Shown: positions 5,738 through 35,964 of the stretch, piece after piece
Position numbering within the stretch: the stretch's first letter is position 1
Layout of the letters: the number at the start of each line of letters is the position of its first letter
Sequence record: LC494302.1
Reading direction: 5' to 3' (one strand)
Length of the DNA stretch: 64,000 bases
Translations under genes and position numbers: made by a program
Notes under the pieces: model-generated
Told to the model about the DNA's origin: nothing
Seen by the model: only the letters and a program-made list of their open reading frames with translations
Databases searched by the model: none

Positions 5738-6280
5738 ATGGCATTTATTAGAAAAGAAAAAACTGTTACTTATAAAACTTTGAATTTTGATGATTGCATT
5801 AATCAATCACAAGACGAAGATATCTTTACTGGATATGTGGTTATTAAAGAAAAAGGATGCATTTCTTATATAAAGGAATTGCAAAATGGAATTGAAGTGA
5901 CTTCAGTTAAATTACTTCCTACTCAAAAACCAACAATATCAAAAGCCCAGTATGGTAATTATTTTGAAGAAAGATATAGTAATAATTCAATAAGTGTTAA
6001 GGCTCATATTATTAAAGGAGAACTAGAAGGAGAATATAGAAAATACAACCCACAAGGAAAATGTGTTTGGGTTAAATACTTCAATTCAGGATATGATGTA
6101 ACATCTGAAATTATAGAGTTCTTAGGTTTAAAATGTACCCCTGAGACTATTCATGATTACAAGTTCAATACTGAAGAAGAGTTTAATCTGATGATGCGTT
6201 ACGGTTCACATTTTAAATTTTTATATGAATATAACATTGACAGTAGTACTTTTGATAAGATAGTACACAACTGTCTCTAA
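5738..6280 (+). CDS. hypothetical protein with a MORN-variant-like repeat
   Basis: GELEGEYRKYNPQGKCVWVKYFNSG; start moved to ATG 5738 behind AGGA because the track start (5660) lies in the ncRNA. Confidence 0.65.
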   Translation: MAFIRKEKTVTYKTLNFDDCINQSQDEDIFTGYVVIKEKGCISYIKELQNGIEVTSVKLLPTQKPTISKAQYGNYFEERYSNNSISVKAHIIKGELEGEYRKYNPQGKCVWVKYFNSGYDVTSEIIEFLGLKCTPETIHDYKFNTEEEFNLMMRYGSHFKFLYEYNIDSSTFDKIVHNCL

Positions 6281-6296
6281 CAAAAGGAATTATATA

Positions 6297-6818
6297 ATGT
6301 CGAAGAAGGATGCTTCGAAAAAACATTCAGTACATTTTAGTACTGGAAAAGATAACTGGACAACTCCAAAGGATTTCTTTGAAGATTTGGATGAACTCTG
6401 GGAATTTACACTAGATGCAGCATGTGTCAAAGAAACTGCATTGTGTGATAATTTTTTCACTCCAGAAGATGATTCACTGTCACAGGATTGGGGAAATAAT
6501 ATAGTTTGGTTGAATCCACCATATAGTGACTTGAAAACTTGGTTATCTAAAGCAGTAGATGCATATAATAACGGGGCAACTGTAGTTATTCTTGTACCCT
6601 CAAGAACCGATACAATTGCTTTTCAGGATTATGCTGCTAAAATATGTGATTGTATTTGTTTTATTAAGGGAAGATTGAGATTTGGTATACCAGAAGAACC
6701 CGATAAGAAAACAGATTCAGCACCATTTCCTTCGTGTCTGATAGTACTGGATAAGTACTTAACCACTGCTAAAATCAATTATCTTAAATCTCTTGGGTTG
6801 GTGATGAAGAATTTATGA
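6297..6818 (+). CDS. phage DNA N6-adenine methyltransferase (PF05869-type)
   Basis: WTTPKDFF, FTLDAAC, DSLSQDW, WLNPPYS, LVPSRTDT, FIKGRLRF, APFPS motifs. Confidence 0.92.
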   Translation: MSKKDASKKHSVHFSTGKDNWTTPKDFFEDLDELWEFTLDAACVKETALCDNFFTPEDDSLSQDWGNNIVWLNPPYSDLKTWLSKAVDAYNNGATVVILVPSRTDTIAFQDYAAKICDCICFIKGRLRFGIPEEPDKKTDSAPFPSCLIVLDKYLTTAKINYLKSLGLVMKNL

Positions 6819-13850: not shown

Positions 13851-14114
13851 ATGAATATTCAAGATAGATTACAATTACTGTACACACTTGAACAGGCTGC
13901 TTATGATCTTGTTCGAAAAATCTCAGATGAACTACCTAAAGGAACTAAAGTTCGTGTACGTGAGATGAATTATTTTTCTGGAGTAATTGAAGAACAAGTA
14001 CTAACAGTGAATAAAGTAACATACTATGAATCTGAGTTGTCTATTCAGTGTGAATCTGATGATGGATTAATATCATATTATGGAACTGATGTAGATATAG
14101 AGGTAATAAAATGA
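13851..14114 (+). CDS. small hypothetical protein (helix plus beta-rich family)
   Basis: ELPKGTKVRV; start reassigned. Confidence 0.7.
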   Translation: MNIQDRLQLLYTLEQAAYDLVRKISDELPKGTKVRVREMNYFSGVIEEQVLTVNKVTYYESELSIQCESDDGLISYYGTDVDIEVIK

Positions 14115-15253
14115 CCCTTTTGCAAATATATGAAGATTTAATGCACTTATGTAATACAAACGATGCATTCTTTTATGTGGATCATAAAAGTCCTGCTGGT
14201 GGCACGTATCGTGTATTCAGTTATCGTCTAGCATCATACACTGATTTCATGCAACCAAATGCGTTGGAAACCCGTGGCTCTATGTGGGAAATTGATGAAG
14301 AAGGTGACATGATACGTTGTGCAGCACGTACAATGAAAAAGTTCTTCAATGCTTACGAGAATCCTGCTACAATGTTCCCTGCTAACACCACATGCGATGA
14401 CATTGCGGTAGTGATGCCTAAGTTGGATGGCTCGATCATCAGTACTTATCGTGATAATGATGGTGAGATTCGTTGTAAATCACATACTGCATTGTATTCT
14501 GACCATGCGATTAACAGCACTCGACTTATTAACGAGAACCAGAATTTGTATCAGTACATCGACGAAGCGGAACGTTTAGGTTACACAGTTAATATGGAGT
14601 ATACAAGCCCAGAGTACCGAATTGTATTACCATATCAGGTAGAACAACTGTTTGTACTGAACGTTCGTCATCGTGTGAGTGGTGAGTTGCTTTGTGGTAA
14701 AGCACTACGTGATAAGTTTCCATGTCTTGCACAGTACAGTACTAATATGACTGGAAAAGATATTCATCACACTTTTCCGGTACGAAATACCTTCCGTGAA
14801 AGCGTGGAGGAAGTTCATAAAATGCTTGATATTGAGGGTTTTGTGTGCATCCTAAATAATGGGACAATGTGTAAAATAAAGACTGACTGGTACAGTTCAT
14901 TACATCTTACAAAAGATAGTATTATTATTGATTCTCATTTATATGAAGCAGTATTAAATGGTTCAAGTGATGATTTAAAACAATTGTTCAGTACTGATGA
15001 ATATGCTATGCAAAAGATATTAAGAATGGAACAATTGGTATTTTCGTGCTATAATGCATTACAAGATGAAGTAGAAAGCTTCGTCAAGGAACACAAGCAC
15101 TTGGAGCGAAAGGAATTCGCAATGAAGGTTCAGGAGTGTTTAACTAATGAACTGAATCGTCAGGGCTTGGCCTTTGCAATGTATAACAATAAGAAAGTTG
15201 ATTACAAAGAGACTCTTATAAAATACATGAAAATTGTACTAAAGGATTTTTAG
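14111..15253 (+). CDS. rnlA: RNA ligase 1 (T4 gp63/RnlA-like)
   Basis: MKKFFN, motif I PKLDGS, NMEY, EGFV, KIKTDWY..LH. Confidence 0.93.
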   Translation: MTLLQIYEDLMHLCNTNDAFFYVDHKSPAGGTYRVFSYRLASYTDFMQPNALETRGSMWEIDEEGDMIRCAARTMKKFFNAYENPATMFPANTTCDDIAVVMPKLDGSIISTYRDNDGEIRCKSHTALYSDHAINSTRLINENQNLYQYIDEAERLGYTVNMEYTSPEYRIVLPYQVEQLFVLNVRHRVSGELLCGKALRDKFPCLAQYSTNMTGKDIHHTFPVRNTFRESVEEVHKMLDIEGFVCILNNGTMCKIKTDWYSSLHLTKDSIIIDSHLYEAVLNGSSDDLKQLFSTDEYAMQKILRMEQLVFSCYNALQDEVESFVKEHKHLERKEFAMKVQECLTNELNRQGLAFAMYNNKKVDYKETLIKYMKIVLKDF

Positions 15254-16076: not shown

Positions 16077-17009
16077 ATGCCAACTATCACACTAACAGTT
16101 GGATTGCCTGGGTGTGGTAAAACTACATGGGCAGTGCAAGAGATTAAAAACGCCAAATCCAAGACTATCAACATCAACCGTGATGATATTCGTGAATCTA
16201 TGGCTGGGTCACATGATGCTTACAAATTCAACGATGCTAATGAGCAGTACGTAACTAATTTACAGTTCAGTGCAGCAAATTCAGCAGCAGAGAATGGTTG
16301 GAACATCATCATATCCGATACGAACCTTAAACAACATTTCCGTAATCTATGGAAAGTATGGGCTAAAGATAATGGCTATGATTACAAAGAAAAGAACTTC
16401 TATGATGATTTTGTACCTAATGAAGACCGTGGTGCAGATGTTCATGAATTCTTTAAGATTAAAGAGTTCGTAAAACTTTGCAAGAAATATAATCTCCAGC
16501 GTGAGCGTTCAGTACAAGATAATATCATTGACACTATGGCAGATACGTACTATTATAGTAAAGCATTGCACATTGGTTACTATGGTAATTCACGAGAAGC
16601 TGCTATTATCGTTGATATCGACGGTACTCTTGCTCATAAATGGGGTCGTAATCCTTACGATGAAAGTACTGTTCTTCAGGATACACCTGATGAAGAAGTT
16701 ATTTTGTCTATTATCGCTGAAGCAGTTTTTCATAAACGCAAGATTATCGTCATGAGTGGGCGTACTGAAGGGTGTCGTGCTGATACCGAACAGTGGCTTA
16801 AGAATTGGGGTGTTCCTTACGATGCATTGTTTATGCGAGATATCGATGATAAACGTCCTGATGATGTTGTAAAATTCGACCTGTACATGAAAAATGTGGT
16901 TGATCATTACGATGTTAAAAAGGTATATGATGACCGCGATCAAGTTGTATTCATGTGGCGTAAACTACTTGGGTTGAAAGTTTTCCAAGTGGCTGAAGGA
17001 AATTTCTAA
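16077..17009 (+). CDS. pseT: polynucleotide 5'-kinase/3'-phosphatase (T4 PseT-like)
   Basis: P-loop GLPGCGKTT, INRDDIR, SDTNL; HAD DIDGT, SGR, RPDDVVK, YDDRDQVV, QVAEGNF. Confidence 0.95.
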   Translation: MPTITLTVGLPGCGKTTWAVQEIKNAKSKTININRDDIRESMAGSHDAYKFNDANEQYVTNLQFSAANSAAENGWNIIISDTNLKQHFRNLWKVWAKDNGYDYKEKNFYDDFVPNEDRGADVHEFFKIKEFVKLCKKYNLQRERSVQDNIIDTMADTYYYSKALHIGYYGNSREAAIIVDIDGTLAHKWGRNPYDESTVLQDTPDEEVILSIIAEAVFHKRKIIVMSGRTEGCRADTEQWLKNWGVPYDALFMRDIDDKRPDDVVKFDLYMKNVVDHYDVKKVYDDRDQVVFMWRKLLGLKVFQVAEGNF

Positions 17010-17012
17010 TAC

Positions 17013-17040
17013 AAAAGGGATCATATATTGGTCCCTTTTT
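17013..17040 (+). terminator. intrinsic terminator
   Basis: AAAAGGGATCA-tatat-TGGTCCCTTTT. Confidence 0.75.
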
Positions 17041-17234
17041 CTTTTAAGGTACATTATAGTGAATGTAACAACACAGATGTTATTACGAAAAGACTACTTA
17101 GAAAATATAGAACGATACTATAGATTGTCTTTGTATGAAAATAAGCATAAAAATTATAGTTTTGATAAACTACTAAATTCCAGTACTGATGATTATCTAT
17201 TTTCATCAATGTTTTATGTGAGAGGTTTATTATA

Positions 17235-17495
17235 ATGGATAAATTTCACACAGATATAACACAGATAGGTAATCTTATCAATAGTCTAATTACTGATTTA
17301 GAAGAAAAGTACTTAGGTCGAAATGTATACGTAGAAATGTATGAAACATATGGTGTTATTGATATGATTTATTACAGTGCATTGAAGTGTGAAATACGTT
17401 TAACAATATGTTTGTTTGAAAAAAATACATTCAACAGAAGTACTGCAATTCGCCAAGTTGGAGTTGATGATATAGAATTATACGAGGAACAATAA
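17235..17495 (+). CDS. small hypothetical protein (helix plus beta-rich family)
   Basis: DLEEKYLGRNVYV. Confidence 0.75.
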   Translation: MDKFHTDITQIGNLINSLITDLEEKYLGRNVYVEMYETYGVIDMIYYSALKCEIRLTICLFEKNTFNRSTAIRQVGVDDIELYEEQ

Positions 17496-17746
17496 TGTTT
17501 GAGCAGGACTTAGAGATATTCAAAAGTCATATTGATTACTTGACTATATTAGAAAATGATTTAACTACAAAGTACAAAGGCATTCGTGTTCTGTGCTGGT
17601 ATGATGATTGGGATTATAAACGTGAACTCACGATTGATCGAATTTATTTCAGTGACGGTGTACTAAATGTACATGGTGTAAATGATTTTGGTCATTCATA
17701 TACATATTCTAATAATGCTAAATTTAAAAGGATCTACAATGAATGA
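17495..17746 (+). CDS. small hypothetical protein (helix plus beta-rich family)
   Basis: DLTTKYKGIRVLC. Confidence 0.75.
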   Translation: MFEQDLEIFKSHIDYLTILENDLTTKYKGIRVLCWYDDWDYKRELTIDRIYFSDGVLNVHGVNDFGHSYTYSNNAKFKRIYNE

Positions 17747-18041
17747 ATATTATCATAATTTATTCGATTACATAAAACTAATAGATGATCTTTCTTTTGA
17801 ATTTCTCAGTACTGAAAAAGTTCTTGAACCTCTCTATTATGATTGTATTAGTTCACTATGTTTAGATGAAAAAGAGATATTAGCAAACAACTTACCATCC
17901 ACGGTCTGTACAATCAATGGTTCCAAGGCATTAGTGTGCGAGGTTAATTTTCATAAATCACTTAATACAATTGTTTACAAGTTCGATAACACTTGGGTAA
18001 ATCATGTAACCAGTAATATTAAATCTGTGAGATTTTTATGA
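17739..18041 (+). CDS. small hypothetical protein
   Basis: AAGGA SD; overlap with upstream stop; start reassigned. Confidence 0.7.
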   Translation: MNEYYHNLFDYIKLIDDLSFEFLSTEKVLEPLYYDCISSLCLDEKEILANNLPSTVCTINGSKALVCEVNFHKSLNTIVYKFDNTWVNHVTSNIKSVRFL

Positions 18042-28568: not shown

Positions 28569-29064
28569 TACTAATATCTGGTTAGATAACATAATCAAGA
28601 CATTAGAATTAATTAAACTTACATTACAAAAAACTACTGATATTGAAATTAATATTAAACAAGAAATATTAAACTATTATCATAGAAACAAATATAGCAC
28701 GTTTATCTCTAAATTAATTTATGGATTATATGATATTGAAGATATTTGCATCGGTTACAGTACTGGTATTTGCTTCACAGTTAATGGTTTAAAAAATGAT
28801 TTAAATTTCAGACTTTCCGATGAAGAGCAAGATTTTCGTAGATTTTGTGATAATATTATGGATACAGATAAAATTACATTTGTTATTGAATTAAATCAAA
28901 CGTGGTCTACATATGCAGATAAACCATTTGAAATTAATGAAACAGATGTGTTAAACTATATTCGAGTTATGAAAATTCATGATTTGTGTAAAAACGCATT
29001 GTTAAGTATTGGAGCTTATAATGAAACATACGACTTGGTTGAAGATAGCAGAAGTAGTTGCTGA
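28540..29064 (+). CDS. hypothetical protein
   Basis: 174 aa; GAGG SD. Confidence 0.75.
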   Translation: MKYTHLSIDDTNIWLDNIIKTLELIKLTLQKTTDIEINIKQEILNYYHRNKYSTFISKLIYGLYDIEDICIGYSTGICFTVNGLKNDLNFRLSDEEQDFRRFCDNIMDTDKITFVIELNQTWSTYADKPFEINETDVLNYIRVMKIHDLCKNALLSIGAYNETYDLVEDSRSSC

Positions 29065-29500
29065 GGAAAGTAAATGTATTTCACAAAAAGTTGGTTGTGT
29101 TATTGTTAAAAATAACCGAGTATTGAGTACTGGATACAATGGTACTCCATCAAAACAACCAAATTGTTGTGATGTGAATCAACACTTAGTCAATGATGGA
29201 CGTTTTCAAGACTGGGTTAGTGATGAAGCAAAGCATGAACATCATGAGTGGAGTAATATTCATGAAATCCATGCTGAAATGAACGCTTTACTCTATAGTT
29301 CTCCTACTGAACGTCAAGGTGCTACTCTTTACACAACACTACAACCATGTTATACTTGTTCTAAGTTGATCGCAGGTAGTGGGATTTCACGTGTAATTTA
29401 TCTCAAAAATTATCCTCGTACACCACCAGAAGCTATTAAAGTACTGGAAGATGCTGGAATTATTGTTAATTGCATTTATGATAAGGGTCTTGATAAATGA
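29021..29500 (+). CDS. cd: dCMP deaminase
   Basis: KVGCVIV, STGYNG, HAEMNAL, TLQPCYTC, SGISRVIY. Confidence 0.93.
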   Translation: MKHTTWLKIAEVVAEESKCISQKVGCVIVKNNRVLSTGYNGTPSKQPNCCDVNQHLVNDGRFQDWVSDEAKHEHHEWSNIHEIHAEMNALLYSSPTERQGATLYTTLQPCYTCSKLIAGSGISRVIYLKNYPRTPPEAIKVLEDAGIIVNCIYDKGLDK

Positions 29501-30161: not shown

Positions 30162-30371
30162 ATTTTATTTCCTTTTTTAAATATAAGTATGAAATATATT
30201 TGTTTTTTACATCAGATGCACCATGAACTAGTTGACAAAACATCAGTGGTATGATATGATCTGTTATAAACTGTACACCTTAAGTTTTATTTTTAAAAAT
30301 TTGAGTTAAGTACAGAAAAAGTTTGACTTAAGTGTTTAAGTACTATATTATTTATATCTTCCTAAACAAAA

Positions 30372-30995
30372 TTGAGGACTTGTTATATGAAAAGACTATG
30401 GCTTGAAGTGATACAAGCAGCAATGTTTCTATTGTTAATAAATTTTCCAGCCAGTGCTGGTATTGAAAGTAAAAATGTGATAAAGTATAATCCTGAAACC
30501 CGAAATGTATATTTCATATCAGATATTACAGATGGGTCACTCAAGAGAATGATAGAGTTGTATGATAAAGAACACTATGATACCATCACAATTACATCTC
30601 CTGGTGGTGATTTTGATGCAGGTATTCGAATGGCAAACTTTGTTAGAGACAATGGGATAAATTTAATTGTTTCTAGGTATTGCAATTCAGCATGTACTGT
30701 GGTATTCTTTAGTGTATCTCCCGAAAAGCGATATATGACAAATCGCTCAGTACTGGGTCTTCATAACATTTCGATTAAAAGTAATGTTACTGATGGTGAT
30801 AATTCATTTGTGTCTGTAAGACAGCTATCAACTTTTACCGAAGAAATGGCAACAAAGGTAGGTTTCCTTTTTTCACTATATGCAGCAAATGGAATCCCAC
30901 CAGAAGTTCTATTTAGAGTTAGTCGTTCTCGTGGTGAAGATGTTGTAATATTAACAAAACCAGAACTGGTTTTTTACGGTTCAGTCAAACAATAA
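30372..30995 (+). CDS. exported ClpP/crotonase-fold protein (COG3904-like)
   Basis: signal-peptide-like N-terminus; ITSPGG, CNSAC, LGLH. Confidence 0.7.
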   Translation: MRTCYMKRLWLEVIQAAMFLLLINFPASAGIESKNVIKYNPETRNVYFISDITDGSLKRMIELYDKEHYDTITITSPGGDFDAGIRMANFVRDNGINLIVSRYCNSACTVVFFSVSPEKRYMTNRSVLGLHNISIKSNVTDGDNSFVSVRQLSTFTEEMATKVGFLFSLYAANGIPPEVLFRVSRSRGEDVVILTKPELVFYGSVKQ

Positions 30996-31065: not shown

Positions 31066-31326
31066 ATGACAAACATCCAAAACTTGACATCTATTATTTT
31101 TTATGCTACTGTAGTAATGTATGCTACAGTTATTTTTCTAACAGTTTTCATTTACAAAGATTATCGTAATGGCTTTATTGATCCAACTACAATGAAGTTC
31201 AATTCAAAATTCGAAGCAATAATTTATTATGTACTATCAACTTCATACTTGGTGTGCCTAATGTTGTTAGGAGCACTAATTTATATCTTATACACAACAT
31301 TATTTGCAATTGGAGCTATTTTATGA
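31066..31326 (+). CDS. small membrane protein
   Basis: two hydrophobic segments. Confidence 0.65.
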   Translation: MTNIQNLTSIIFYATVVMYATVIFLTVFIYKDYRNGFIDPTTMKFNSKFEAIIYYVLSTSYLVCLMLLGALIYILYTTLFAIGAIL

Positions 31327-31916
31327 CCTGTATTATTGCACACACTGACGGAGTAAGTTCTTTTATTGCTGGCGATAAGTTAGGAAGCAATGGATTTACA
31401 AAAACTGTTCAAACTGAGCCAAAGGTATTCGAGAAAGAATTTATCAAGTTACATGATGATGGACTAACTAGAACTAAAGAAGTAATGGCATTGGGTTATA
31501 CTACATCATTTCGTATGGGTCAGTTGTTAAATTATAACCTTAATTTACCTGAACAAGCTGCTGGTCAAACATTTTCACAATATTTGGTTCTTAAAGTTAT
31601 TCCAATCATTCGTCAAATGTTTAAAGAAGAATGGGGTTCACGAGATGCATCACAAGATGTAGGTGGTGGACAATTTATCATTCTCCACAATCATACAATC
31701 TATGAAGTTCAAGAAGACTTTTCAGTACTACAACCTAAAACAAGAATTACCGCAGTAGGTAGTGGGACATATCATGCAATTGCAGCAATGCAAGCATATA
31801 TTGAAGTTGAGAACGAATCTAAAAAACCACTACACGAACGTATCAAATCAATTTTTAAAATTGTTAGTGATAATGTAACAAGCGTAAGCGAAGAGTTTGA
31901 TGTTTTAAAATATTAA
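31323..31916 (+). CDS. Ntn-hydrolase (HslV/proteasome-beta-like) protein
   Basis: start MTCIIA behind GGAG (N-terminal Thr nucleophile), AGD, KVF, SFRMGQLL, AVGSG..HAIAAM. Confidence 0.75.
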   Translation: MTCIIAHTDGVSSFIAGDKLGSNGFTKTVQTEPKVFEKEFIKLHDDGLTRTKEVMALGYTTSFRMGQLLNYNLNLPEQAAGQTFSQYLVLKVIPIIRQMFKEEWGSRDASQDVGGGQFIILHNHTIYEVQEDFSVLQPKTRITAVGSGTYHAIAAMQAYIEVENESKKPLHERIKSIFKIVSDNVTSVSEEFDVLKY

Positions 31917-31943
31917 AAGTACTAATATTATAAGAGAGAATAG

Positions 31944-32138
31944 ATGATGGCATACACAATTTATGAATGGGTTTTGAGTTTTTTTATAGTTTTTTCTATT
32001 GTTGTAATTTATAACAATGCTAAATGCTTATATAGGGACTTGAAATCCAATGGTTATCACAAAGATAATAATTTTATGTATGCCTATCATATTGGAATCA
32101 TTCTGTTATTATCAATATATTTAATTGTTTTTTTATAA
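31944..32138 (+). CDS. small membrane protein
   Basis: two hydrophobic segments. Confidence 0.6.
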   Translation: MMAYTIYEWVLSFFIVFSIVVIYNNAKCLYRDLKSNGYHKDNNFMYAYHIGIILLLSIYLIVFL

Positions 32139-32141
32139 GGA

Positions 32142-32900
32142 TTGAATATGATATCAGAAAAATTTATAAGAAATGAAGGTAAAAAGCGATTACTGATTAT
32201 ATCAGGTGCAGGACTTTCTGTTGAAAGTGGTATGGAACCTTTTCGATTTGATGATGGTTTGTGGGATACATTTAAAATTAATGATGTATGTAACATTGCG
32301 AGTTTAACTACAAAATATCATGTTGTTCATTCTTTCTATAATACATTACGTGTAAAATTGGGACAATGCGAACCGAATGCAATGCATTATTTTATAAAAT
32401 CGTTAGAAGATCAATATGGTGATTGCTTCCTTCATATGACTTCTAACATGGACGATCTTTATACTCGTATTGGTGGTCATGAGCTTAAACTTCATGGAAA
32501 CTTGTGTGAAGTTATTGAAAATTATAGTATCAATTCCGATGATTATAATGTTATTAACTGCGGATACGAACCATACATACCAAAACATGATGTTTTTGCT
32601 AAACCAAATGTAGTAATGATTGGAGAATATCATCGTTATGTTGATGGTATTCGCTTACCAATTTACGAAGAACGAAATAATGTGTTGAAATCTCTTAATG
32701 AAAATGATACAGTTATTGTAATTGGTAGTAGCGATACAGTACTGGTATGGTCGAGATTAGCAGCAGCATTGCCATGTTATAGTGTTAATGTTAACATTCG
32801 TAAAAATGATAATGATTTTTTGTTTAATGAAAAAGTTATCAAGCCAGCAACCAAAGCAATACCGCATCTAGAGACTATAATTAAGGAACGTATGAAATGA
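32142..32900 (+). CDS. Sir2-family NAD-dependent deacylase
   Basis: SGAGLSVESG..FR..DGLW, TSNMDDL, LHG, KPNVV, IGSS. Confidence 0.9.
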   Translation: MNMISEKFIRNEGKKRLLIISGAGLSVESGMEPFRFDDGLWDTFKINDVCNIASLTTKYHVVHSFYNTLRVKLGQCEPNAMHYFIKSLEDQYGDCFLHMTSNMDDLYTRIGGHELKLHGNLCEVIENYSINSDDYNVINCGYEPYIPKHDVFAKPNVVMIGEYHRYVDGIRLPIYEERNNVLKSLNENDTVIVIGSSDTVLVWSRLAAALPCYSVNVNIRKNDNDFLFNEKVIKPATKAIPHLETIIKERMK

Positions 32901-33448
32901 GTGTTAAAGAAGTTCCCTTTGGTGAATATGGCACACGTGCAAATTTTGTATTTTGTTATTTCTTTGCAAGAAAATGCAACCCTTACAAAAACTATGAGTT
33001 GAATGATATACCAGAAGTAAATTTAGTATTACTGCAATTACGATGGGATGGTCTTCTTGGTGGATGTGGTGGAACCGTAGAAAGTACTGATATCTCACTA
33101 GAAGATGCGTTGCGTCGTGAAGTTCAAGAAGAAATGGATTACAATATTTTTGTTTCCCATCTTCGACCACTCAAAACTTTTGAAATTTACCCAGGTGCAA
33201 ACAGTCATAGTTTTAGCTATGAAGTGAGCTATGACGAGTTGAAACACATTAGAGATGGATACACTAATGCTAAACATGCAAGTGCAGAAGTTGCTGGTGT
33301 AAATTTATGTCATATTTCTCGTTATTCTAAGGGACAAAATCGAGAAGCGGGATATAATAATCTTATGACACAGAACTTCATCGGTACAGCAAAACAAGAA
33401 TTGGAGTATCTGGTTCAAAAAGAAAACTTACTAATTAGTTATCTATAG
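32897..33448 (+). CDS. Nudix hydrolase, NUDT16-like
   Basis: LQLRWDGLLGGCGG...DISLEDALRREVQEEM Nudix box; C-terminal FIGTAKQEL. Confidence 0.85.
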   Translation: MSVKEVPFGEYGTRANFVFCYFFARKCNPYKNYELNDIPEVNLVLLQLRWDGLLGGCGGTVESTDISLEDALRREVQEEMDYNIFVSHLRPLKTFEIYPGANSHSFSYEVSYDELKHIRDGYTNAKHASAEVAGVNLCHISRYSKGQNREAGYNNLMTQNFIGTAKQELEYLVQKENLLISYL

Positions 33449-33457
33449 GAGTTTAAC

Positions 33458-33778
33458 ATGTCTTACTCAATGTTTTTGGATGATATTCGTGATGCAAATC
33501 TATATTATCCAAACCAAGATATGGTGGTATGTCGTGACTTTAAAAGTGCATGTGAATATGTTATTGAAAATGGAATTCCAGCATTTGTATCATTCGACCA
33601 TGACTTGGGTGATGTGAGCGAAGACGAAAAGACTGGATATTCTTTTGCTAAGTTTCTTATTGATTATATGTTTGATAATAATATTAAAGAACCGTTTGAG
33701 TACTTTGTTCACAGTAGTAATCCTGTTGGTAAAATTAATATTGAAACATACTTAAACAATGGATTTAACGCATTATGA
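33458..33778 (+). CDS. cyclic-phosphate-processing receiver (cREC)-like domain protein
   Basis: FLDDIR, VSFDHDLG, TGY, VHSSNPVG. Confidence 0.78.
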   Translation: MSYSMFLDDIRDANLYYPNQDMVVCRDFKSACEYVIENGIPAFVSFDHDLGDVSEDEKTGYSFAKFLIDYMFDNNIKEPFEYFVHSSNPVGKINIETYLNNGFNAL

Positions 33779-34077
33779 TTCAAACACACATCAAAAGTCT
33801 TATTTGTACTGTTCTGTTAGGTGCAGGAGTTCTTTGGTTCGGACAGTATCACGAGAACACTAAGCGTACCAACATTCACTACAATACCGCAGAAGTTGTT
33901 AGTTTAGGACAATGTAGCGAGTCCAAATGTTCATTTATGTATAAAACCCAAAATGGTGAAGTACGTAATGGACTATCAAGAGAACCAGTTTCAATTGGTC
34001 AACTTGTTTACCAGGAGTGCTGGGAAGAAAAGGTTCGAGGTTCACGTTGCTATGTTGAATACGAACCAAATATGTAA
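33775..34077 (+). CDS. membrane-anchored hypothetical protein
   Basis: N-terminal TM helix; four Cys in the soluble part. Confidence 0.7.
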   Translation: MIQTHIKSLICTVLLGAGVLWFGQYHENTKRTNIHYNTAEVVSLGQCSESKCSFMYKTQNGEVRNGLSREPVSIGQLVYQECWEEKVRGSRCYVEYEPNM

Positions 34078-34137
34078 TAATCCGAGTCAATAACATTAGT
34101 CGAGTACAAGGATGTACTCATAACTCAAGGATGTTTT

Positions 34138-35577
34138 ATGAAAAAATATACAATTGACACAAACGTACTACTATCTGACCCTAATGCATCTATTGCTTTT
34201 GATGGTGCTACAATCATTCTACCATTTACAGTACTGGAAGAATTGGATTCAATTAAGAGTCGTAATGTAGATGTTTCACGCGATGCTCGTGTTGCTATTC
34301 GTAACATTGAAGCAATTATTGCAGATGCATCACATGATGAGATTAGTAGTACTGGTGTTAATATTGCTGATGTTCATACCAATATGAATCCTGATAGCAA
34401 ATTGTTTGTTATTACAAACGAAGAAGCTGAAGCACTAATTCGTACTAAAGGTTCAGAAGAGAAAGTTCAAACCCTTCTCAAAAGCACAGTACCTGATGAT
34501 AAAATCATTCTGGTAGCTTTAGCAACAGAATCAGTACTGGTAACTCGTGATATCAACATGCGTATCAAAGCACTAAGTTATGGTGTCGAGGTACAAGATT
34601 ATCGCCATGATATTGTTATTGGTGATAGTGATTTGATTCACATTGGTCAACACCATTTGGAAATTAATTTTTGGGAAGTATATAGCAACTTAACCAATAC
34701 TAATATTCAATCCGAACAAGTTGGTCGTCGTTTGTATCATTACATTTCTAAAAGCTTGATTGAACATTTGCTTCCACAAAATCTATGCATCGGTGATTAT
34801 CTATATGATGATGCAGACGTATTATTTGTGTACGAAGGTCAATCAGCAATTGAGGAAGATGATGGAACACTAACACCAGAAGATATTTTGGTATTCCAAG
34901 ATATTGGACAATCAGTAGCTTTACGTGCTAAAGTATGGGATATTAAAGCAAAGAATATCCAACAAGCACTCGCCATCAACAGTATTCTCGATCCTGATGT
35001 ACATCTAACAGTACTGCTAGGTTCTGCTGGTACTGGTAAAACACTAATTACGATTGCTACTGCATTAGAATTAGTACTGGAAAAACGTAAATACGACCGA
35101 ATCATCTTCTCTAAAACTCAAGACTCACAGTTTGAAGATATTGGTTTCTTGCCAGGTTCAGAAGCAGAAAAAGTGATTCCATTCTGTGGAGCCGCAATTG
35201 ACGCGTTAGAGTTTCTTCATAAAGATGATGCTAACCCACAAGGTAGTATTGAAGAGATTATGAAACGTAATGTTATTCAATTTAAAGCACTAAACTTTGT
35301 ACGTGGACGTTCATTCACCAACACTATTCTAGTAGTTGATGAATTCCAAAACATTACACCTGCACAAGCCAAAACAATCTTGACACGAGCAGGATTAAAC
35401 TGTAAAGTAGTAATTATGGGTAACTTGAGTCAGATTGACAGTAAGTTTATTAGTCCTGTTAACAGTGGTTTGACATATGTAACTGAGAAGTTTAAAGATT
35501 GGGCAGGTTGTCGTGTCATCGAACTAGAAGGTGTTGTTCGTTCACCACTTGCAGAATTTGCTGAAGAAAATATGTAA
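34138..35577 (+). CDS. phoH: PIN-PhoH protein (PhoH2/YlaK-like)
   Basis: N-terminal PIN (IDTNVLL, EELD, DDKI, TRDINMRIKA); GSAGTGKT, GFLPG, RGRSF, DEFQN, GNLSQID, RSPLA. Confidence 0.93.
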   Translation: MKKYTIDTNVLLSDPNASIAFDGATIILPFTVLEELDSIKSRNVDVSRDARVAIRNIEAIIADASHDEISSTGVNIADVHTNMNPDSKLFVITNEEAEALIRTKGSEEKVQTLLKSTVPDDKIILVALATESVLVTRDINMRIKALSYGVEVQDYRHDIVIGDSDLIHIGQHHLEINFWEVYSNLTNTNIQSEQVGRRLYHYISKSLIEHLLPQNLCIGDYLYDDADVLFVYEGQSAIEEDDGTLTPEDILVFQDIGQSVALRAKVWDIKAKNIQQALAINSILDPDVHLTVLLGSAGTGKTLITIATALELVLEKRKYDRIIFSKTQDSQFEDIGFLPGSEAEKVIPFCGAAIDALEFLHKDDANPQGSIEEIMKRNVIQFKALNFVRGRSFTNTILVVDEFQNITPAQAKTILTRAGLNCKVVIMGNLSQIDSKFISPVNSGLTYVTEKFKDWAGCRVIELEGVVRSPLAEFAEENM

Positions 35578-35834: not shown

Positions 35835-35938
35835 TTCATTTGAAGACATATTGTGGAGTTCTTAATAAATACTTTTATAAGAATAATAATACTTTTTATT
35901 AAATTAAAAAGAACTCCATGTGTTATTTCAGTTTTTCG

Positions 35939-35964
35939 TCCCTGTCTTTTGGCAGGGATTTTTT
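35939..35964 (+). terminator. intrinsic terminator
   Basis: TCCCTGTC-tttt-GGCAGGGA plus T-tract. Confidence 0.75.

Follow-up and report, generated by a model that had tools for sequence, protein, structure and literature searches.

A sirtuin, a NUDT16-family Nudix hydrolase and a cREC protein as the core of a predicted NAD+/ADP-ribose cassette common to Rak2-like jumbo phages

In jumbo phages, a gene neighbourhood centred on a sirtuin has been delineated as type 1 and predicted to serve RNA repair that utilises nicotinamide adenine dinucleotide (NAD+); its exemplar is Serratia phage BF (Iyer et al., Viruses 2022, PMC9503650, section 3.7.3). According to the proposal made in that section, the sirtuin acts in the manner of KptA on RNA 2'-phosphates, and a 2H protein, cREC and a Nudix enzyme process the resulting ADP-ribose cyclic phosphate (PMC9503650). 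Here, we analyse three adjacent genes for a sirtuin (Sir2), a Nudix hydrolase and a cREC (cyclic-phosphate-processing receiver-like) protein, which lie at positions 32142-33778 of a 64,000-nucleotide stretch of sequence record LC494302.1 (the window). The locus agrees with the type 1 neighbourhood with respect to the phage group and to the order sirtuin, Nudix, cREC, PIN; the Nudix protein of phage BF is 46% identical to that of the window and the loci are syntenic. In contrast to the published neighbourhood, the phage of the window has no 2H, NAMPT and NMNAT-Nudix genes, and its Nudix and cREC proteins are not fused. The cassette is therefore already known from comparative genomics, as a prediction; this publication had been missed by the first-pass annotation of the window, whose interpretation of the three genes is partly supported by the results presented below.

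Several characterised systems can be compared with individual parts of the cassette. Vertebrate NUDT16 and Xenopus X29 decap U8 small nucleolar RNA, hydrolyse inosine diphosphate and triphosphate (IDP, ITP) and cleave ADP-ribose as pyrophosphatases, whereas TIRR/syndesmos is an inactive paralogue. The phage Nudix protein shares with NUDT16/X29 the catalytic REx2EE motif, E136 (E131 in the phage), R50 (R49), the C-terminal FIG-x-A-x-x-x-L helix, the fold and the hidden Markov model (HMM) family; it differs in its sequence (21-26% identity), in the residues Gly56 and Glu168 of the base pocket, in forming a separate clade, and in being encoded in a phage operon together with a sirtuin and cREC. 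Escherichia coli CobB, a class III deacylase, is the nearest solved relative of the sirtuin and has the NAD pocket, the catalytic histidine and the Y-x-x-x-R motif in common with it, but the phage protein lacks the zinc cysteines, scores far below the equivalog cut-off and belongs to a phage-specific clade. The pathway consisting of Tpt1/KptA, Cpd1 (a 2H protein) and Poa1 (a macro protein) corresponds to the one proposed here in that an NAD+-dependent transfer would be followed by the clean-up of ADP-ribose 1''-2'' cyclic phosphate; however, no protein homologous to Tpt1, Cpd1 or Poa1 is involved, and sirtuin, Nudix and cREC would substitute for them. NARP2 (NAMPT plus NMNAT) and Acb1, whose counter-defence functions are experimentally established, are encoded immediately upstream of the cassette in Alcyoneusvirus, Eneladusvirus and jumbo phages related to them, and share with it the theme of NAD and nucleotide signals, whereas the phage of the window has neither, and the cassette proteins belong to neither system. 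The papers on NARP3, RyDEP and Avs5 were also checked and are unrelated to the cassette.

In our interpretation, the region constitutes the core of a putative NAD+/ADP-ribose cassette common to Rak2-like jumbo phages. With a probability of about 0.4, we propose that the cassette processes NAD and ADP-ribose such that the sirtuin makes an ADP-ribose derivative, which is dismantled by the NUDT16-like Nudix enzyme and cREC.

The window can be assigned to an Asteriusvirus jumbo coliphage of the PBECO4/121Q group: over positions 31900-34100, phages SP27 and PBECO4 are 100% identical to it, and 121Q plus about 20 further Asteriusvirus jumbo phages (genomes of approximately 350 kb) show 98-99% identity. 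In related phage records, the three genes are labelled 'Sir2-like / cobB', 'nudix hydrolase' and 'hypothetical protein'. Their open reading frames (ORFs) are all located on the plus strand, at 32142/32148-32900 (Sir2), 32897-33448 (Nudix) and 33458-33778 (cREC). As read from the sequence, the stop codon of Sir2 overlaps the start codon of Nudix in an ATGA; a 9-nucleotide gap containing a GGAG ribosome-binding site separates the Nudix stop from the cREC start; and a second ATGA joins the cREC stop to the start of a fourth gene at 33775. The arrangement of ORFs, overlaps and ribosome-binding site bears out the three coupled genes of the first-pass annotation, and Sir2, Nudix and cREC are, judged by the sequence, translationally coupled. 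The extent given for that module, 32142-33778, needs correction at both ends. As the ribosome-binding site AAGGA at 32137-32141 precedes ATG 32148, which is also the start used in the SP27 annotation, the sirtuin most likely begins there and not at TTG 32142. Downstream, the conserved coupled block continues beyond 33778 and also includes a membrane protein of 100 amino acids (33775..34077, plus strand; phrog_14661, 1.2e-44) and a PIN-PhoH2-type protein of 479 amino acids (34138..35577, plus strand; PIN_4 7e-20, PhoH 7e-44). The PHROGs assignments agree with those of Pfam.

The Nudix protein (32897..33448, plus strand) matches the Pfam model PF22327 (Nudt16-like) with 67.9 bits (1.3e-18; cut-off 27), whereas the generic NUDIX model reaches 29.7 bits (7e-7). 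A phmmer search of the PDB returned X29 at 2.8e-12, human NUDT16 at about 3e-11, NUDT16/X29 chains up to 8e-11 and TIRR/syndesmos at about 5e-7; the best generic Nudix enzyme had an E-value of 0.05. An AlphaFold2 model built on 83 relatives gave a predicted local distance difference test score (pLDDT) of 95.8. When this model was compared by means of Foldseek, the best 39 PDB matches were all NUDT16, X29, TIRR or syndesmos with template modelling (TM) scores of 0.71-0.84, and the first fold from outside the family was a coenzyme A pyrophosphatase with a TM score of 0.56; cluster matches in the AlphaFold Database agree with this result. Pfam, the PDB sequence matches and the fold of the model thus identify the protein as a true member of the NUDT16 family and not as a generic bacterial Nudix enzyme. 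The likeness to NUDT16 is far beyond chance and, as the first-pass annotation had claimed, extends beyond the Nudix box: all four motif pairs given there, including AKHASAEVAG versus AKDHGLEVLG and FIGTAKQEL versus FIGSAREQL, occur in the phmmer alignments (E-values 2.8e-12 to 8e-11).

The residues required for catalysis are retained. Among the 83 relatives, no variation occurs at R49, G55, G58, G59, E75, E78, E79 and E131, and R74 is almost invariant; the catalytic series R74-E75-V-Q-E78-E79 as well as E131, the equivalent of human E136, are intact. As complexes of NUDT16 with ADP-ribose, di-ADP-ribose, inosine monophosphate (IMP) and flavin adenine dinucleotide (FAD) are among the closest structures, cleavage of an ADP-ribose pyrophosphate lies within the known chemistry of the family.

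The complex with IMP would also suit a role in nucleotide-pool sanitation, with the Nudix enzyme acting as an IDP/ITP hydrolase against deaminated purines, for example those arising from the ATP-deaminating defences Cad1 and RADAR; the Cad1 paper does report a defence converting ATP to ITP. A distant family member is moreover fused to the ITPase Ham1 and located among purine-synthesis genes. In this fusion (P0061, L020:5001-6176), the neighbours encode adenylosuccinate synthetase and SAICAR synthase, which suggests a putative role in the clean-up of inosine nucleotides for that branch. The fusion and the phage clade are, however, widely separated in the tree, the human base-contact residue Q170 is a glutamate in the phage, and the coupling to a sirtuin and cREC would have no explanation; we regard sanitation as very improbable.

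The NUDT16-like family is large. In a profile search of 1.84 billion representatives, 489 clusters (50% identity) were found at E <=0.001 and 166 at <=1e-10, and PF22327 was present in 20 of the 20 long members tested. cREC, Ham1 ITPase, HD_4 and a cytidylyltransferase-like domain occur as fusion partners; the sampled contigs are both phage-like and cellular. Chordate, Campylobacterota and Uroviricota clusters are the neighbours in the ESM Atlas, and a second search retrieved many animal U8-decapping enzymes. Closer to the window, a tblastn search with the Nudix protein yielded 75 phage records, 71 of which stem from Rak2-like jumbo phages infecting Escherichia, Klebsiella, Salmonella, Erwinia, Serratia, Yersinia, Cronobacter, Pectobacterium and Xanthomonas; outside this group, the match was a distant one in Aeromonas phages of about 100 kb. 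IMG/VR contributed close relatives on eight jumbo-phage contigs only, and none (for example in prophages) was found in 185,579 bacterial species genomes.

A phylogeny of 108 rows was computed with IQ-TREE. A branch with a support of 95 divides it: on one side stand the animal sequences together with three unnamed rows and Goniomonas, and on the other the jumbo-phage clade (95) is placed among metagenomic sequences. An origin of the phage genes within the animal clade was rejected, since the maximum-likelihood tree separates the two. If phage and eukaryote rows are forced together, the tree is worse by 0.73 log-likelihood units (p-AU 0.505 in the approximately unbiased (AU) test); as this test cannot reject the constrained tree, a relation of phage and animal sequences as neighbours is neither shown nor excluded. 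It is a solid result, though, that the family is not mainly animal and that the phage genes lie outside the animal clade. The 489 clusters, their phage-like and cellular contexts and the two separate clades contradict the view that the gene represents a mainly animal clade in a phage. The length of the Nudix box was rejected as a shared derived character: the GG-to-RE spacing is 15 in the window, as in vertebrate NUDT16, but each group contains sequences with a spacing of 14 as well as sequences with one of 15 (2 versus 17 sequences in the phage clade; 33 versus 66 in the mostly animal set).

The cREC protein (33458..33778, plus strand) matches PF20274 with 80.5 bits (1.5e-22; cut-off 27) and has thousands of homologues. 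D8, D9, R11, F46, D47, H48, D49, L50, G60, H85, N88 and G91 are invariant in 82 of them. The AlphaFold2 model (pLDDT 96.9) consists of alternating strands and helices; for the model of the nearest cREC cluster in the ESM Atlas, which is not that of the window's protein, the closest non-cREC structures were response-regulator receivers (TM scores 0.60-0.67), and no solved relative was found by sequence or profile. These data characterise cREC as a receiver-like protein and putative phosphoesterase. Iyer et al. defined the family in 2021 (PMC7824862), and in the passages dealing with it an activity on cyclic phosphates is a prediction (PMC7824862, PMC9503650). A phage cluster of the ESM Atlas contains a fusion of cREC with DUF5522, which the cREC passages of these two papers do not mention. 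In phage BF, in GAP32 and in related phages, Nudix and cREC form a single polypeptide; this finding suggests that the two act as one unit in consecutive steps on one substrate.

The third protein, the sirtuin (32148..32900, plus strand; PF02146 3.7e-20, phrog_2162 3e-77), has its closest solved structures in CobB (6rxj and 1s5p, E-values of about 1e-21). The motif GAGxS..FR (GAGLSVESG..PFR), T98-x-N100-x-x-D103 and the catalytic H116-G117 are kept. Across the clade, as represented by nine phage sirtuins, Y64xxxR68, N100, D103 and H116-G117 are invariant, and so is GAGxS..FR except in K64-1, where it is degenerate. The segment of the zinc module contains no conserved cysteine in any of the nine, i.e. 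the Cys4 set is absent. With NCBIfam CobB, the score was 93 bits at an equivalog cut-off of 318. Sirtuins of the defence type (DSR, ThsA, SIR2-HerA and others) were ruled out, since no PADLOC defence-sirtuin model matched at E 0.01. Judged by its motifs, the protein can be classified as a CobB-related, class III-like sirtuin without zinc-binding cysteines. Two unusual family members were observed. In Alcyoneusvirus (K64-1, L003:3264-4001; likewise RaK2 and L012), GNG replaces GAG and FR is lost, while His, Asn and Asp are retained; this sirtuin may be inactive or altered. On an IMG/VR contig (L018:5863-6623), the sirtuin is split into two overlapping ORFs (5863-6111 and 6108-6623); possible causes are a frameshift, an error of sequencing or decay to a pseudogene.

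The relationship to CobB leads to the idea of a host-takeover protein deacylase: a CobB-like deacetylase or desuccinylase would reprogram host or phage proteins, and Nudix and cREC would clear the O-acyl-ADP-ribose. CobB as the closest solved relative, the retention of all deacylase catalytic residues, the invariant Y-x-x-x-R, which binds acidic acyl groups, and the very wide distribution of the clade over 987 phage records, with T5-like, rV5-like and jumbo phages among them, are in agreement with such an activity. Yet the score is 93 bits where the CobB equivalog demands 318, the zinc module, which gives the peptide cleft its shape, lacks its cysteines, and E. coli has a CobB of its own. Furthermore, a deacylase does not explain why the clade is repeatedly linked to cREC and to genes for RNA ligase, kinase and phosphoesterases. 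Two published contexts were verified here. In rV5, the order is Rnl1 - cREC (52 bits) - Sir2 - MazG pyrophosphohydrolase, accompanied by a kinase and a metallophosphoesterase; in the T5-like phage SP15, Sir2 adjoins HAD_SAK_2, a 'Swiss army knife' RNA-repair phosphatase. On balance, a deacylase is unlikely, and the recurrent linkage of the clade to RNA ligase and end-healing genes favours a role of the sirtuin at RNA ends.

The window itself encodes proteins of this kind, namely a T4-type Rnl1 (14111-15253, plus strand; RNA_lig_T4_1 plus T4_Rnl1_C) and Pnkp (16077-17009, plus strand; AAA_33 plus HAD_PNKP), which together constitute a complete pair for tRNA repair of the T4 style, located 15-18 kb upstream of the cassette. 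The distance between Rnl1 and the sirtuin is similar in BF and K64-1.

In order to assess conservation, 12 syntenic loci from several genera were compared; two of them were taken from annotated phage records, eight from contigs of IMG/VR and two from metagenomic contigs. The gene order is [NMNAT-Nudix] - [NAMPT] - ... - [2H] - Sir2 - Nudt16-like - cREC - membrane protein - PIN-PhoH; in the 11 syntenic loci outside the genus of the window, the Nudix protein is 40-55% identical to that of the window. In 10 of the 12 loci, the gene for the 100-residue membrane protein separates cREC from PIN-PhoH; it is absent in the metagenomic loci L006 and L008. PIN-PhoH follows Nudix-cREC in all 12, including L008, whose lineage has kept Nudt16-like, cREC and PIN-PhoH without a recognisable sirtuin. 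In this lineage, two proteins of 248 and 155 amino acids occupy the position of the sirtuin (L008/L009:4800-6014); neither has a Pfam match, and the longer one gave no confident match in the ESM Atlas.

The constant presence of PIN-PhoH would suit yet another function, the decapping or decay of RNA 5' ends. Like X29/NUDT16, NudC or RppH, the Nudix enzyme would strip NAD caps, other nucleotide caps or a 5' pyrophosphate, and the exposed 5'-monophosphate ends would be handed to the PIN-PhoH2 5'-3' helicase-nuclease. The downstream protein is, as its architecture implies, a putative PIN nuclease fused to a PhoH ATPase/helicase: PIN_4 covers the N-terminal residues 4-156 and PhoH residues 269-473, and the NCBIfam model 'RNA 5'-3' helicase PhoH2' scores 152 bits, below its equivalog cut-off. 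X29 and NUDT16 are RNA decapping enzymes, and the NUDT16-FAD complex is among the closest structures. Decapping would leave the sirtuin and cREC without a role, however; RNA binding by the Nudix protein is putative only, and the linkage of Nudt16-like genes to NAD synthesis favours a small-molecule substrate. For these reasons, we consider decapping doubtful.

This linkage is not confined to one group of phages. NAMPT and NMNAT are both present in K64-1, in BF and in the metagenomic locus L006. Outside the jumbo-phage clade, an NAPRTase-NMNAT-Nudt16L-NadE cluster is located on an 888-kb contig, and a phage-like contig has Nudt16L near NMNAT and NAMPT. In Acinetobacter phage vB_AciJM_313 (L026:636-4815), cREC stands in a row with Prs (ribose-phosphate pyrophosphokinase), NAMPT, a 255-residue protein and a polynucleotide kinase, which brings NAD salvage and RNA end-healing genes together in one block. 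Because the linkage to NAD genes recurs in jumbo phages, on the two contigs and in the Acinetobacter phage, an NAD-derived small molecule is favoured as the substrate of Nudix and cREC. The 2H protein encoded upstream in sister genera belongs to the Acb1 family (PF23474, 56 bits); Acb1 is not mentioned for this gene in the neighbourhood section of the paper by Iyer et al., and NUDT16 occurs 0 times in that paper, which thus seems to note neither of the two family memberships (PMC9503650). In the SP27 genome, there is no NAMPT, no NMNAT-Nudix and no 2H gene, but only a sub-threshold cytidylyltransferase-like match; the genus of the window has lost the upstream NAD and 2H genes and keeps only the core of the cassette.

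Based on these findings, the proposed pathway can be outlined as follows. The sirtuin, which is CobB-related and has Y-x-x-x-R and the catalytic histidine but no zinc cysteines, would use NAD+ on an anionic group. Its target would most likely be the phosphate at a damaged RNA end, with a Tpt1/KptA-like reaction as proposed by Iyer et al. (2022); an acidic acyl-lysine is the less probable target. Nicotinamide and either ADP-ribose 1''-2'' cyclic phosphate or O-acyl-ADP-ribose would be released, and the derivative degraded by the two downstream enzymes is probably this product of the sirtuin itself. The Nudix enzyme would split the pyrophosphate to give adenosine monophosphate (AMP) and a phosphoribosyl product, whereupon the phosphate that remains, whether cyclic or terminal, would be opened or removed by cREC by means of its invariant Asp/His/Arg pocket. 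PIN-PhoH2, encoded downstream, would handle RNA. In sister genera, NARP2 (NMNAT-Nudix plus NAMPT) and the Acb1-family 2H protein upstream could rebuild NAD+ from nicotinamide.

A number of observations weigh against this pathway. The T4-type Rnl1/Pnkp pathway leaves no 2'-phosphate, and a Tpt1-like step is consequently not obviously needed. PIN nucleases are metal-dependent and make no cyclic phosphate ends, and the 2H enzyme, which would be the source of 2'-phosphate ends, is missing in the phage of the window. In K64-1 and RaK2, the NAD-binding motif of the sirtuin is degenerate, and the L008 lineage indicates that the Nudix-cREC pair does not strictly need a sirtuin of the phage. In the Nudix enzyme, the residues F57 and Q170, which contact the base in human NUDT16, correspond to Gly56 and Glu168 in the phmmer alignment; the substrate preference may therefore differ from that of the human enzyme, although these two residues characterise the vertebrate pocket and not the family as a whole. 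The prediction of a Nudix-cREC complex gave no answer and was not used as evidence. In the literature, we found no experiment on cREC, on this sirtuin clade or on a phage NUDT16-like enzyme.

The Acb1 and NARP2 neighbours and the sirtuin-less lineage keep a counter-defence function under consideration. Here, Nudix-cREC, with or without the sirtuin, would act as an eraser that destroys immune products made by the host from NAD+, i.e. the cyclic ADP-ribose isomers of Thoeris, His-ADP-ribose, free ADP-ribose released by NADase effectors, or ADP-ribose attached as a mark to protein, DNA or RNA; the products AMP and ribose phosphate would feed the rebuilding of NAD+. In sister genera, the cassette is situated directly behind the Acb1-family gene and NARP2, the L008 lineage retains Nudix-cREC without Sir2, and NUDT16 has been solved in complex with ADP-ribose and di-ADP-ribose. 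A precedent is RyDEP, a signal-degrading enzyme that fuels NAD+ synthesis (PMC13232231). On the other hand, glycocyclic ADP-ribose signals are linked ribose to ribose, and before RyDEP an enzyme degrading them was reported as not known (PMC13232231). The genus of the window has retained the cassette yet lost NARP2 and Acb1. A phage-encoded NAD consumer is also ill-suited to a pure eraser, as the sirtuin consumes NAD and erases no marks, and in rV5-like and T5-like phages the linked genes for RNA ligase and end healing suggest a different role.

The same considerations apply to the first-pass annotation, which had read the module as a possible reversal system for ADP-ribose or NAD caps or as a destroyer of signals derived from ADP-ribose. 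The sirtuin, the NARP2 and Acb1 genes of sister genera and the two contigs with NAD-synthesis neighbours support the view that it is centred on NAD and ADP-ribose. A reversal of ADP-ribosylation by the Nudix enzyme alone does not hold: it leaves phosphoribose on the target, and as the cassette contains no glycohydrolase (macro, ARH or NADAR), true reversal is not to be expected. Given the linkage of the sirtuin in rV5-like and T5-like phages, the RNA-repair prediction of the published neighbourhood section (PMC9503650) fits at least as well. Altogether, a function as eraser appears unlikely, and we prefer the pathway in which Nudix and cREC process the product of the sirtuin.

The surroundings of the cassette contain further genes, whose membership is less clear. 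Directly upstream of Sir2, an ORF encodes a small hydrophobic, presumably membrane-located protein of 64 amino acids (31944..32138, plus strand). It has no Pfam match, and among the compared loci a homologue exists only in phage 121Q (L011); at its position, two 'membrane protein' genes are annotated in K64-1 and one 'hypothetical protein' in BF. Whether it is a member of the cassette is uncertain. Just upstream, also on the plus strand, a ClpP/NfeD-like protease (30372-30995; phrog_26024) and an HslV-family peptidase-like protein (about 31320-31916; phrog_1040) are encoded. A dCMP/cytidine deaminase gene (29009-29500, plus strand) precedes the cassette and is conserved there in the L008 lineage as well as in several sister phages. 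Elsewhere in the genome, a further Nudix gene, of generic type, adjoins a macro-domain-like gene at 257542-259196 of SP27 (LC494302, outside the window) and at 16318-17971 of K64-1; the macro match amounts to 27 bits in K64-1 and is sub-threshold in SP27. These two genes may form a separate ADP-ribose-processing pair.

Signals delimiting the transcription unit were searched for by consensus. A terminator-like hairpin with a T run (35938..35959, plus strand; 9-bp stem with 5 GC pairs) is a possible end of the unit; the scan found 4 such sites versus 2.5 expected, which is no evidence of function. The promoter scan of the region was not above the shuffled expectation; its strongest promoter-like sites, at 30232-30260 and 30463-30491, are consensus matches only. 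The public RNA runs inspected for transcription, which consisted of low-depth metatranscriptome contigs and one run that is probably DNA, were uninformative.

The original observation of the three genes adds little to the published comparative genomics. What is added here is the NUDT16-family membership of the Nudix protein, the Acb1-family identity of the 2H gene, and the recurrent linkage of Nudt16-like and NAD-synthesis genes. One further, speculative reading, which we hold to be improbable, is as follows: the Nudt16-like enzyme and cREC would be a two-step destroyer of ADP-ribose-based immune products, even without the sirtuin, in an anti-defence island with Acb1 and NARP2. The substrates would be free or cyclic-phosphate ADP-ribose and perhaps Thoeris-type signals, and AMP and ribose phosphate would go into the rebuilding of NAD+. 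If this were true, cREC would represent a new class of phosphoesterases on the receiver fold, and the phage sirtuin clade would be a Tpt1-like RNA 2'-phosphotransferase or the writer of an ADP-ribose mark at RNA ends that is erased by the pair. The cassette is tractable, as it occurs in coliphages and E. coli K-12 MG1655 served as the isolation host for at least one of these. Questions that can be addressed with it are the use a phage makes of an NAD-consuming sirtuin, whether a protein with receiver fold can be a phosphoesterase, and the role of a NUDT16-type Nudix enzyme in RNA repair versus counter-defence.

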